Source of the DNA: Pavona decussata
Taxonomy: Eukaryota
Assembly (NCBI GenBank): GCA_977016875.1
Contig: CDRNST010000085.1
Coordinates: 2,852,001-2,916,000, forward strand
Reading direction: 5' to 3'
Length of the DNA stretch: 64,000 nt
Shown here: one piece after another, positions 4,957 through 30,836 of the stretch
Layout of the letters: the number at the start of each line of letters is the position of its first letter
How positions within the stretch are numbered: position 1 is the first letter of the stretch
Position numbers and translations under genes: made by a program
Notes under the pieces: model-generated
The model's database searches: none
Told to the model about the DNA's origin: nothing
Seen by the model: only the letters and a program-made list of their open reading frames with translations

Positions 4957-4973
4957 ATGTTTATTTACGCAAG
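4957..4973 (+). CDS. EGF-discoidin gene exon 1 (MFIYAS..)
   Basis: ATG TTT ATT TAC GCA AG|gtaag; the phase-2 end joins in frame to tag|T CCT TCT ACA ATG at 8540. Confidence 0.6.
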
Positions 4974-30300: not shown

Positions 30301-30836
30301 AAGTGGTGTAGGACGTGTTGTCACATGATTAAGTTGATAAAATATCACGTAACAAAACGTTCCGAGAGGGAATCGAAACGAAAGCTTGTATTTCAACATA
30401 AATTTTCGATCCTGAAAACGAAACCTTTTCGTTTGACATATTATGACAGGATCAAGGAACAATTATTTCTTTAACATATTTAATTTAATTTTTAATATTA
30501 ATTATCCTGTTTGCTCCCAACCAAAAAGGACGAGTGAAATGGGACTTTCGTTGATTTTACTCCTTTGATACCTTCTTACACACAGCAGTTCACGGCCTTG
30601 ATCACATATTTGCTTATTTTTAGCTTGTTTTTGCTTATTTTTAGCTTAATCTTTCCCGCCCTTTGATTGTTTATCTTTTTGTCTTTAATTCCAAGGTATT
30701 CCCGGGAAACACAGACTATCGTGGTATTGTGTACAATTTCCTCAGTCGTCACGTCCAAGCCCAATTTGTTCGGTTTTACCCCGTGAATTTCAGAGATTGG
30801 CCTTGTTTGAGAGTTGAAATTTTTGTTGGAAACTGA
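4957..30836 (+). CDS. Whole-gene model: signal-anchored (type II membrane) protein with 10 cbEGF domains and a C-terminal F5/8 type C (discoidin) domain; 14 exons, ~637 aa
   Basis: Exons 4957-4973, 8540-8718, 14781-14906, 16348-16467, 17497-17622, 18339-18467, 19511-19636, 20361-20489, 21534-21659, 22384-22509, 23538-23663, 24391-24516, 27144-27460, 30696-30836. All introns are GT-AG with compatible phases; total 1914 nt ending in TGA. The two N-gaps could hide extra exons. Confidence 0.8.
4991..5695 (-). mobile_element. Decayed R4/Dong-like non-LTR retrotransposon 3' end (restriction-like endonuclease domain)
   Basis: The - strand reads [78 protein letters not shown].. with stops and frameshifts. 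(TAA)n tail at 4991-5002; truncated by the gap. Confidence 0.8.
7718..7990. mobile_element. Harbinger-like MITE remnant
   Basis: GGCCCGCTTAAA..TTTCAACA start, internal TTCAACA/TGTTGAA inverted subrepeats, and TGTTGAAGCG..AAACCGGG end. Confidence 0.55.
8540..8718 (+). CDS. EGF-discoidin gene exon 2, signal-anchor/transmembrane helix
   Basis: [59 protein letters not shown]; donor CAAG|gtaaga is phase 1, matching the EGF exons. Confidence 0.75.
8768..9335. mobile_element. MITE with imperfect TIRs and many (T)AGACG/CGTCT subrepeats
   Basis: CTACTAGAGTACACGTTATCCGTCTGG versus CCAGACGGATTATGGCGCATCTAGTT. Confidence 0.55.
9432..10261. mobile_element. Tc1/mariner (pogo/Tigger-like) MITE
   Basis: TA-CAGTCGGACCTCTGTTAAGCGGCCACCCT ... 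AGGGTGGCCGCTTAATAGAGGTGCGACTG-TA; repeated ATTAAGCGGCCA motifs. Confidence 0.85.
12237..12344. repeat. Perfect 108-bp palindrome with no spacer
   Basis: The 54-bp arms are exact reverse complements, centred at 12290/12291 (TAGTGG|CCACTA). Confidence 0.97.
13502..13667. mobile_element. Fold-back (palindromic) MITE
   Basis: ATAGACCTTTCTCACTCGGCGGCCAT ... ATGGCCGCCGAGTGAGAAAGGTCTAT; near-complete hairpin. Confidence 0.85.
13667..13831. mobile_element. Second fold-back MITE abutting the first
   Basis: TAGGCCATTTCCGAGTTGC..CTCATTTTAAAAGCGAGG / CCTCACTTTTAAAATGA..GCAACTCGACAATAGCCT. Confidence 0.75.
14781..14906 (+). CDS. cbEGF exon 1
   Basis: cag|..[42 protein letters not shown]|gtat; phase 1-1, 6 Cys, Ca-binding consensus. 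Confidence 0.9.
14988..15384. mobile_element. TTAA-flanked (Kolobok-like) MITE; family members also at 35865-36585 and 57142-57480
   Basis: TTAA-GGACGGTGCCTACT ... AGTAGGCATCGTCC-TTAA. Confidence 0.85.
15648..15861. mobile_element. Harbinger-like MITE nested in an older MITE remnant (~15470-15965)
   Basis: GGGGCCCCTTTGACGAAAGTCTCGGTAA ... TTACCGGGACTTTCGAGAAACGGGTCCC. Confidence 0.7.
16348..16467 (+). CDS. cbEGF exon 2
   Basis: tag|..[40 protein letters not shown]|gtacgt. Confidence 0.9.
17497..17622 (+). CDS. cbEGF exon 3 (type A, repeat unit 1)
   Basis: cag|..[42 protein letters not shown]|gtgagt. Confidence 0.88.
18339..18467 (+). CDS. cbEGF exon 4 (type B, repeat unit 1)
   Basis: [43 protein letters not shown]; 3-nt in-frame insertion; canonical splice sites. 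Confidence 0.82.
19233..19293 (+). pseudogene. Truncated cbEGF pseudo-exon (unit 2)
   Basis: tag|..[21 protein letters not shown], then homology is lost; third Cys is now Ser, and the second half and donor are missing. Confidence 0.75.
19511..19636 (+). CDS. cbEGF exon 5 (type A)
   Basis: [42 protein letters not shown]; cag| ... |gtgagt. Confidence 0.82.
20361..20489 (+). CDS. cbEGF exon 6 (type B)
   Basis: [43 protein letters not shown]. Confidence 0.82.
21256..21316 (+). pseudogene. Truncated cbEGF pseudo-exon (unit 3)
   Basis: Near-identical copy of 19233-19293. Confidence 0.75.
21534..21659 (+). CDS. cbEGF exon 7 (type A)
   Basis: [42 protein letters not shown]. Confidence 0.82.
22384..22509 (+). 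CDS. cbEGF exon 8 (type B)
   Basis: [42 protein letters not shown]; the conserved aromatic F is replaced by L. Confidence 0.78.
23261..23320 (+). pseudogene. Truncated, frameshifted cbEGF pseudo-exon (unit 4)
   Basis: Copy of 19233-19293 with an extra 1-nt deletion (GATGATACACAAG versus GATGAATGCACAAG). Confidence 0.75.
23538..23663 (+). CDS. cbEGF exon 9 (type A)
   Basis: [42 protein letters not shown]. Confidence 0.82.
24391..24516 (+). CDS. cbEGF exon 10 (type B)
   Basis: [42 protein letters not shown]. Confidence 0.82.
25575..26389. mobile_element. TTAA-type (Kolobok-like) non-autonomous element
   Basis: AGTGCTACTATGA ... TCATAGTAGCACT-TTAA. Confidence 0.8.
26444..26733. mobile_element. 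MITE with ~75-bp TIRs starting CACT, inserted in (TA)n
   Basis: (TA)n-CACTCGATTGCAAAAACGTTGACACCTAAAAAGCATAAACC ... GGTTTATGCTTTTTAGATGTCAACCTTTTTGCAATCGAGTG-(TA)n. Confidence 0.85.
27144..27460 (+). CDS. F5/8 type C (discoidin) domain exon 1
   Basis: cag|..[76 protein letters not shown]|gtgagt; typical F5/8C motifs. Confidence 0.92.
28186..28794. mobile_element. TTAA-flanked MITE containing a nested palindromic MITE (~28494-28640)
   Basis: TTAA-AGGGGAAGTATCA ... TGATACTTCACCT-TTAA; internal GTTTCATCAGATATCCAAACAC / GTGTTTGGATATCTGATGAAAC. Confidence 0.8.
28799..30152. mobile_element. TIR element enclosing a Penelope RT fragment
   Basis: ~30-bp TIRs GGGACTGTTCGTTAATTATGGCTAAGAGGGG / CCCCTCTTAGCCATAATTAACGAACAGTTC. 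Confidence 0.8.
29190..29940 (-). mobile_element. Decayed Penelope-like reverse transcriptase fragment
   Basis: Across frames: [81 protein letters not shown]. Confidence 0.85.
30696..30836 (+). CDS. F5/8 type C domain exon 2 (last coding exon)
   Basis: aag|[46 protein letters not shown]; matches the F5/8C C-terminal consensus FxGN..RFxP..CLRxE. Confidence 0.92.
   Translation, partial: VFPGNTDYRGIVYNFLSRHVQAQFVRFYPVNFRDWPCLRVEIFVGN

Follow-up and report, generated by a model that had tools for sequence, protein, structure and literature searches.

A 13-exon coral gene predicted to place a discoidin head on a membrane-anchored EGF stalk

Here we describe an intact 13-exon gene of the coral Pavona decussata, whose most likely product is a type II membrane glycoprotein that crosses the membrane once and has an EGF stalk and a discoidin head, a reading to which we give roughly an even chance of being right. 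The gene lies in a window of 64,000 nucleotides, which is the whole stretch of DNA that was analysed (contig CDRNST010000085.1, positions 2,852,001 to 2,916,000 of the forward strand). Judged at the sequence level, it appears to be a real gene that combines known modules in a new way, and a literature search found no paper describing a TM leader-EGF-discoidin architecture. Known EGF-discoidin proteins such as MFG-E8 and EDIL3 act as secreted bridges; a membrane-anchored form on a long and recently lengthened stalk would, if true, be a new receptor design. Through its shared leader the gene is linked to about 20 further coral genes, which are unannotated and have different heads. If expressed, these genes would be a compact natural case of exon shuffling building receptors from an anchor, a variable stalk and a swappable head, and they would be candidate surface recognition molecules for contact of the coral with microbes or symbionts. 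Corals hold hundreds of lineage-specific modular genes, so that one such gene is by itself no surprise.

Exon anatomy

Thirteen phase-compatible exons, all with AG/GT borders, follow each other on the + strand (Table 1). The CDS extends from 8550 to 30836 (628 codons), and the order and phases of the exons encode a hydrophobic leader, ten cbEGF modules and one F5/8C domain, which is the domain order that a first-pass annotation of this DNA had proposed. The 637-aa product given there found no support: this length needs a mini-exon at 4957-4973 spliced to 8540, and the present model, in which the 13 exons would be spliced together, gives 628 aa with 28 N-glycosylation sequons. All our searches took single exons as queries.

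Two assembly gaps interrupt the region, both outside the coding exons. The gap in intron 1 could possibly hide a phase 1-1 exon; a word search with the EGF1 open frame for a related contig spanning this gap gave no match. The sequence from the leader to EGF1 holds no remnants of another gene's exons, and 1-14780 contains just this one leader-like exon with a phase-1 donor.

Table 1. Coordinates in the window of the exons of the model and of the features discussed
Feature	Position	Strand	Remarks
Proposed first mini-exon (ATG + GT donor)	4957..4973	+	17 nt; unsupported
Assembly gap upstream of ATG	5696..5889	.	2.7 kb upstream
Leader exon (CDS part)	8550..8718	+	ATG at 8550; phase-1 end, donor CAAG/GTAAGA; GT 8719-8720
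Assembly gap, intron 1	12771..12920	.	between leader and EGF1
cbEGF exon 1	14781..14906	+	phase 1-1; EGF_3 53 bits, EGF_CA 41.7 bits
cbEGF exon 2	16348..16467	+	phase 1-1
Tandem genomic array	17393..24757	+	2013 bp x 3.65 copies, 95-96% identical, two EGF exons per unit
cbEGF exon 3, type A	17497..17622	+	three sequons
cbEGF exon 4, type A'	18339..18467	+	two sequons, one extra Ser
Decayed 5' half of EGF2-like exon	19233..19331	+	further copies 21256-21354, ~23261-23358
cbEGF exon 5, type A	19511..19636	+	
cbEGF exon 6, type A'	20361..20489	+	
cbEGF exon 7, type A	21534..21659	+	
cbEGF exon 8, type A'	22384..22509	+	consensus aromatic replaced by Leu
cbEGF exon 9, type A	23538..23663	+	
cbEGF exon 10, type A'	24391..24516	+	
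F5/8C exon a	27144..27460	+	enters phase 1, ends phase 0; five sequons; 54.2 bits
F5/8C exon b	30696..30836	+	stop TGA 30834-30836

The leader and its helix

The leader exon encodes a Met, a basic tail of 12 aa, a 27-aa uncharged helix and a Ser/Thr-rich linker with one NTS sequon. The basic tail and the hydrophobic helix of about 27 aa, both noted in the earlier reading, are thus confirmed: residues 12-38 are 27 uncharged residues in a row, with a Kyte-Doolittle 19-residue maximum of 3.27. Three Arg and one Asp carry the charges of the tail, and one Arg follows directly after the helix. The N-terminal hydrophobic segment is long enough to span the bilayer and has more positive charge on its N-terminal side, and type II anchoring of the predicted protein is plausible. 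An RGD motif occurs only at tail residues 5-7, where the related species has RGN.

The helix core is near-invariant across the nine leader copies compared, at a dS of about 0.6, and dN/dS of the leader against its paralogs is about 0.3. We favour a signal anchor over a cleaved signal peptide because of this conservation and because of the length of the helix.

A predicted stalk, probably lengthened by tandem duplication

The ten EGF exons between 14781 and 24516 are all bounded by AG/GT, all phase 1-1 and all encode six Cys together with a D-x-[DN]-E-C motif. Six of them were scanned with Pfam EGF_CA (PF07645) and scored 37.7-45 bits against a cut-off of 27. The aromatic of the hydroxylation consensus C-x-[DN]-x4-[FY]-x-C is kept in all but exon 8 (9 of 10, with a Leu in that exon), and RGD is absent from every EGF exon. 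Exons 3, 5, 7 and 9 each carry all three of the sequons (NCS, NAT, NCT) that had been ascribed to type A repeats, and the remaining four exons of the array carry two each.

Eight of the ten exons belong to a tandem genomic array of 2-kb units, which fits the earlier suggestion of a stalk of expandable length; the array seems to have arisen after the related species diverged. Among these eight exons the sole indel difference is in frame, and substitutions amount to 2.0%, versus 3.5% in the surrounding intron DNA. Half-EGF sequences inside the array were considered as exons and rejected: they match no Pfam family, they are truncated copies of EGF2 and one of them (~23261-23358) is frameshifted by a 1-nt deletion. 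These decayed half-exons are probably not spliced in.

A single discoidin domain

Exon a matches Pfam F5_F8_type_C (PF00754) at positions 12-90 of the profile with 54.2 bits (cut-off 28.2), and exon b at positions 86-127 with 19.3 bits; the two F5/8C pieces are therefore contiguous across the last intron. Sequence matches of the F5/8C exon in the PDB include neuropilin b1, DDR2 and lactadherin. There is exactly one F5/8C domain, and the stop follows directly after it. The N-terminal Cys of the domain is present (GCQAVG); the usual terminal Cys is missing, and with it the disulfide that would join start and end. Since the same Cys-less ending is found in the related species and in an NCBI model of Porites lutea, whose homologous domain has an identical splice point and ending, we regard it as a trait of a subfamily and not as damage.

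The Porites model is named a discoidin domain receptor and is only 134 aa long. In discoidin domain receptors, which have type I topology, a cytoplasmic tyrosine kinase domain follows the discoidin domain. We rejected this identity for the window gene, where the last F5/8C exon runs for 46 codons up to a stop that the related species shares.

Conservation in a related species

In the related species the leader and both F5/8C exons are intact, with identical splice sites and an identical stop codon. Its contigs end 90 nt past the leader and begin again 1.9 kb before F5/8C exon a, and the junctions and the EGF array lie outside them. Over the leader and both F5/8C exons pooled, 23 synonymous and 40 non-synonymous changes give a dN/dS of 0.50, which denotes only moderate constraint; the synonymous excess has a p of about 0.01 by a rough binomial estimate. 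For the leader alone (7 synonymous and 9 non-synonymous changes) neutrality is not rejected. Of the residue changes in F5/8C exon a, 15 in all, we count 12 in three loops, which line up with loops of neuropilin b1 that, from its structure, we take to be ligand-binding. Such a clustering of between-species changes in the putative binding loops of the head fits a role in recognition.

Relatives of the leader

About 21 paralogous leader exons are found elsewhere in the genome, with a common ATG, an invariant helix core and, in most, a phase-1 donor. This donor is present in 7 of 8 paralogs examined (CAAG/GTAAGA; CAGA/GTAAGA in one). Some copies have decayed: C169:1119409 is without the conserved GT donor and C185:63523 has a stop codon. 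Within the family, the window leader has diverged furthest (dS ~0.6).

EGF arrays follow a paralogous leader at no fewer than four other loci (C26:805k, C131:186k, C185:148k, C169:1119-1143k). With these loci the window gene shares a homologous leader, a conserved phase-1 donor and an EGF array downstream on the same strand. We assign the leader to the EGF-array genes because paralogous leaders precede EGF arrays at these loci. The exons most similar to EGF1 (68% identical) and to type A (85% identical) occur at the C169 locus, with their order preserved. The heads differ: downstream of paralogous leaders, TLDc was seen four times and a COLFI/fibrinogen-like exon once, and among the leader loci surveyed only the window gene pairs the leader with F5/8C. 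As in the window gene, the EGF array of the leader-EGF-TLDc and leader-EGF-COLFI/fibrinogen-like paralogs is in phase 1-1 and a single globular domain comes last, but most of their EGF modules belong to the hEGF/Notch type.

A search of the leader against 1.84 billion representative proteins gave nine matches of 63-120 aa, and no protein longer than 120 aa carried the leader. Those of the nine that were examined are genomic read-through ORFs; no independent gene model, in any species, therefore joins the leader to EGF modules. When the 146-aa open frame around the leader served as the query of a word search, with just the leader part scored, the sole matches were the ORF in the window itself and the ORF of the related species.

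Alternative readings

Could the protein simply be a soluble bridge? Like MFG-E8 or EDIL3, it would then be a secreted EGF-discoidin protein whose leader is an unusually long cleaved signal peptide. The leader is indeed N-terminal with a basic n-region, and the small residues that follow the helix (MIRA/GN in the window, MVRS/GN in the paralogs) could be the -3/-1 positions of a cleavage site. However, with 27 residues the hydrophobic stretch is roughly double the length of a usual h-region, and the von Heijne group's work on signal peptidase is reported to show that long h-regions block cleavage. In addition, a signal peptide needs only hydrophobicity, so that a helix core conserved in its specific sequence at a dS of about 0.6 would be unusual. 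We consider secretion unlikely, if still worth bearing in mind. A somewhat more improbable reading is that the leader lies outside this transcript, as the relic of a leader-EGF gene or through a scaffold mis-join, the true first exon being unrecognised or hidden in the intron 1 gap. That gap does separate the leader from EGF1, no database protein joins the two, some copies of the leader have decayed and the comparison of the window leader with its relative is compatible with neutrality. Yet strand, order and phase of the leader all fit; two species have kept its ATG, ORF and donor intact; its dN/dS against the paralogs is low; the 14.7 kb upstream of EGF1 offer no alternative leader exon; and the order from leader to EGF recurs at the other loci.

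It is also conceivable, but in our estimate very unlikely, that the locus is not a working gene but a young chimera, unexpressed or decaying, a pseudogene in the making. Decayed half-exons sit within its array, a dN/dS of 0.5 is high, and the genome holds hundreds of F5/8C and EGF paralogs, many of which must therefore be redundant. But each of the 13 exons has an open frame and intact splice sites, the array exons have diverged less than their introns and have kept their frame, and the orthologous exons of the related species are intact, with synonymous changes in excess.

Proposed layout and comparison with known systems

In the preferred reading, that of a type II membrane glycoprotein, the N-terminal tail of 12 aa would lie in the cytosol and be followed by an uncleaved signal anchor of 27 aa and a short Ser/Thr-rich linker. 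The ten calcium-binding EGF modules would then form a semi-rigid stalk of an estimated 25-30 nm or so, going by known cbEGF rod dimensions, and the single C-terminal discoidin domain would bind its ligand through loops at one end of the beta-barrel. The tail has no signalling domain, so the protein would capture or adhere to its ligand; any signalling might pass through a partner that touches the conserved membrane helix. Symbiont recognition, apoptotic-cell clearance and matrix adhesion are speculative candidate roles for the protein and its putative ligand.

We envision that the gene arose by phase-1 exon shuffling, which would have brought three parts together: the shared leader exon, of which the family counts about 22 copies; the EGF array, which looks recently extended by tandem duplication of a 2-kb unit; and a head drawn from the large local F5/8C family.

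MFG-E8 (lactadherin) and EDIL3 (Del-1) likewise carry EGF modules followed by F5/8C in one extracellular polypeptide, and the window F5/8C exon matches lactadherin C2 with an E of about 1e-12. These proteins have a short cleaved signal peptide, two to three EGF modules that include an RGD for integrin binding, and a tandem pair of discoidin domains, whereas the window gene has a 27-residue leader, ten cbEGF modules that lack RGD and a single discoidin domain that lacks the terminal Cys. The gene thus has neither of the hallmarks of the MFG-E8/EDIL3 type, RGD in an EGF module and paired discoidin domains. By analogy, its predicted layout follows the same logic as that of the repeat-neck type II receptors DC-SIGN/CD209, CL-P1/COLEC12 and the class A scavenger receptors, in which a short tail and an anchor precede a stalk of variable repeats and a C-terminal head. 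They are not homologous to it, having coiled-coil or collagen stalks and C-type lectin or SRCR heads. Teneurins are also type II and have tandem EGF repeats beside the membrane, but differ in their large cytosolic domain, eight EGF repeats, YD-repeat shell and lack of a discoidin head. In corals, "EGF repeat proteins" of unknown function are reported to be under strong selection (Cooke et al. 2020, PMC7695477); no signal-anchor leader or discoidin head is described for them there, and "discoidin" and "transmembrane" each occur 0 times in that text.

A wider proposal, which we put forward tentatively and think has only a small chance of being right, is that this leader exon is the hallmark of a "leader-stalk-head" receptor system of the coral lineage, a modular innate-recognition repertoire as yet undescribed and unannotated. 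The invariant helix core of the signal-anchor cassette would dock to a common membrane partner, and phase-1 shuffling would join this anchor to adjustable EGF stalks and interchangeable heads (TLDc, COLFI/fibrinogen-like or discoidin). Where leader exons stand in tandem, they could act as alternative first exons.

The region upstream of the leader

A start at 4957, as placed by the first-pass annotation, was rejected: homology to the leader paralogs is confined to 8544-8726, BLAST gave no homology at the mini-exon, and no other support for it was found. The flanks of the gap at 5696-5889 are collinear on one contig of the related species. Near 4957-4973, a 9-nt motif is shared with the 5' regions of the leader paralogs.

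Gene model

Thirteen open exon segments stand in line on the plus strand of this AT-rich DNA (GC 0.32-0.44; the parent assembly is 602 Mb), encoding a leader, an EGF stalk and a discoidin (F5/8C) head (Table). With whole and split codons counted, the model comes to 628 residues and 28 N-glycosylation sequons. In the leader product, a tail of 12 residues with 3 Arg and 1 Asp leads into an uncharged stretch of 27 residues (Kyte-Doolittle 19-residue maximum, 3.27), which is followed by a Ser/Thr-rich linker. All ten EGF exons are preceded by AG and followed by GT, have phase 1-1, encode six Cys and start with D-x-D/N-E-C; the six that were scanned all exceed the Pfam cut-offs for EGF_CA and EGF_3. 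The first-pass annotation gave each type A EGF repeat three sequons, which is true of four array exons out of eight, the remainder having two each. Neuropilin b1, DDR2 and lactadherin are the nearest solved structures to the discoidin domain by sequence. Domain and database searches were run per exon.

Coordinates of the features. Unprefixed positions are those of the window; C26, C131 and C169 are contigs of the same assembly
Feature	Position	Strand	Remarks
Leader exon	ATG 8550 to 8718	+	GTAAGA donor next; phase 1 end
Ten EGF exons	starts 14781, 16348, 17497, 18339, 19511, 20361, 21534, 22384, 23538, 24391	+	120-129 nt
F5/8C exon a	27144-27460	+	phase 1 entry; F5_F8_type_C profile positions 12-90, 54 bits
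F5/8C exon b	30696-30836	+	F5_F8_type_C profile positions 86-127; ends at TGA
Antisense ORFs	17483-17884, 19482-19913, 21505-21936, 23509-23940	-	133-143 aa
eIF4G-like segments	60347-60661, 63580-63906	-	putative
Tandem leader run	C131:185903-191337		L013, L019, L038, L039
Tandem leader run	C169:1119272-1143105		L042, L043, L046, L048
Tandem leader run	C26:805181 and 807613		L023
TLDc exons	C26:813363, C26:1361136, C26:1343477, C131:167002		downstream of paralogous leader-EGF arrays

The 637-residue product proposed earlier requires a 17-nt exon (4957-4973) joined to 8540. Nothing supports such a mini-exon, so the assembly gap at 5696-5889 lies upstream of the coding sequence. Homology with paralogous leader exons spans only about 8544 to about 8726. 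Both flanks of this gap are collinear with a single contig of a related species. The collinear match stops exactly at 4973, the donor of the proposed mini-exon, and the stretch 4974-5940 (about 970 nt, including the gap) has a counterpart of just about 290 nt in the related contig (L031 6234-6525); the lineage of the window has undergone an insertion or an expansion here. A second gap (12771-12920) lies within intron 1, 4 kb past the leader donor and 1.9 kb short of EGF1, the first EGF exon. No coding frame crosses it, but the presumed leader-to-EGF1 link does.

A leader exon shared among paralogs

Does the leader belong to this gene? Among 1.84 billion representative proteins it finds only nine matches, of 63-120 aa; those read through continue into the intron and are therefore products of genomic ORF calling. 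Word searches of protein databases found nothing further joining leader to EGF exons. In the genome, about 21 more copies of the leader exon share its ATG, and seven of the eight examined retain the phase-1 donor (CAAG/GTAAGA in six, CAGA/GTAAGA in one). Same-strand EGF arrays lie downstream of copies at C26:805k, C131:186k and C185:148k, and a fourth such locus, C169:1119-1143k, is followed by the exons that are, genome-wide, most similar to EGF1 (68% identity) and to the type-A EGF (85% identity) of the window, and their order is conserved. Ahead of EGF1, a stretch of 14.7 kb contains no second hydrophobic exon that starts with Met and has a phase-1 donor, and the window no relic hEGF, TLDc or fibrinogen-like exons. 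Although the window leader is the most diverged of its family (dS about 0.6), its ATG, frame and donor are intact and its helix core is near-invariant; dN/dS against paralogs is about 0.3. This indirect evidence is consistent with the leader being part of the gene.

Elsewhere, two to four leader exons run in tandem ahead of a single EGF array; they could serve as alternative first exons or be duplicates in decay. Decayed copies do occur: the conserved GT donor is missing from C169:1119409, and a stop codon interrupts C185:63523.

Proposed protein and its rivals

We envision, at about even odds, a type II membrane protein acting as a surface glycoprotein, in which a short cytosolic N-terminal tail would be followed by an uncleaved membrane anchor, a stalk stiffened by calcium and a discoidin head that would bind a ligand. 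The tail has no signalling domain, and its RGD is not conserved, reading RGN in the related species. Small residues after the helix would suit leader cleavage and a secreted protein, an unlikely outcome, against which argue the length of the helix and the conservation of its specific sequence, with an A-x-x-x-A spacing within the invariant core; for these reasons we favour an anchor. That the leader lies outside the transcript is quite unlikely, and an unexpressed or decaying gene very unlikely.

Leader and head, taken together, appear moderately constrained between species. In two contigs of one ENA assembly from a related species, about 85-90% identical to the window in non-coding DNA, the leader and both F5/8C exons are orthologous, with identical splice sites and stop codon. 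Nei-Gojobori dN/dS between the two species is 0.42 for the leader, 0.46 for exon a, 0.65 for exon b and 0.50 pooled (23 synonymous and 40 non-synonymous changes; dS 0.18), with a synonymous excess of p about 0.01 by a rough binomial estimate, which suggests moderate purifying selection. By our own count, 12 of the 15 amino-acid differences in exon a map to three segments aligned with what we take to be the ligand-binding loops of neuropilin b1. This would fit a binding surface evolving faster than the core; loops are generally less constrained, so the clustering is no proof of positive selection. Porites lutea supplies the nearest named protein in the databases; an NCBI model of a homologous domain from this species shares the splice position and likewise lacks the usual terminal Cys.

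The stalk array

Between 17393 and 24757, a 2013-bp unit carrying two EGF exons is repeated 3.65 times at 95-96% identity. Since the units differ less than the non-coding DNA of the two species, the expansion looks younger than their split, unless the units are being homogenised by gene conversion. Divergence among the exons is 2.0% of sites versus 3.5% in the rest of the unit, and their sole indel difference is one in-frame codon. Every full unit also contains a truncated copy of the 5' half of EGF2, the second EGF exon; with no Pfam match, and a 1-nt deletion in one, we take these copies as dead pseudo-exons. Long antisense ORFs across the type-A EGF exon of every unit are, most likely, a side effect of the repetition.

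Interchangeable heads

Downstream of paralogous leader-EGF arrays lie exons for other putative heads: TLDc exons (Pfam E 1.5e-11) in four places, and on C185 an exon slightly above the COLFI and slightly below the Fibrinogen_C cut-off. Among the leader loci surveyed, only the window pairs leader with F5/8C. Its closest F5/8C paralogs (50-61% identical) cluster about 1 Mb off on the same contig, where C85:1.66-1.97 Mb holds 15 copies or more. The two inspected (L021 4051-4240 and L029 6769-6955; C85 about 1.825 and 1.842 Mb) show no EGF exons ahead of them and share a conserved hydrophobic first exon distinct from the leader, MSSKSHGLSVSPGTVFSVFCFLLYSAGF..., which ends at a phase-1 donor; this exon could provide discoidin heads with another type of membrane anchor. 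Further EGF-plus-F5/8C genes lie at 2.1-2.5 Mb of this contig. The window gene is thus best read as one more phase-1 exon-shuffling product of leader, stalk and head modules. These domains have undergone very large expansions in this lineage, with genome-wide counts as follows: F5/8C (>150 scored matches, 623 candidates), TLDc (>150 matches, 247 candidates), Fibrinogen_C (196 matches) and EGF (>2000 candidate exons).

The modules are ordinary; their combination departs from MFG-E8/EDIL3 and DDR. A single discoidin domain, EGF modules without RGD and a long hydrophobic leader set the gene apart from MFG-E8/EDIL3, and the protein's end directly after the discoidin domain rules out a DDR. In predicted function the protein resembles repeat-necked type II lectin receptors, to which it is unrelated. 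Clusters of coral genes with large cbEGF arrays, uncharacterised in function and under selection, are known (PMC7695477). Our literature search found no description of a leader-cbEGF-discoidin architecture. Of greater interest is the leader exon, unannotated and common to genes whose heads are interchangeable.

Other features of the window

Long simple repeats occur at 2200-2560 and 32954-33043, comprising a trinucleotide run, read as poly-Ile and poly-Asn when translated, and a repeat of short period, to which places within the array units and at about 55200 are also similar. On the minus strand, two open segments resembling eIF4G (MIF4G-type) exons by eye probably belong to a neighbouring housekeeping gene.
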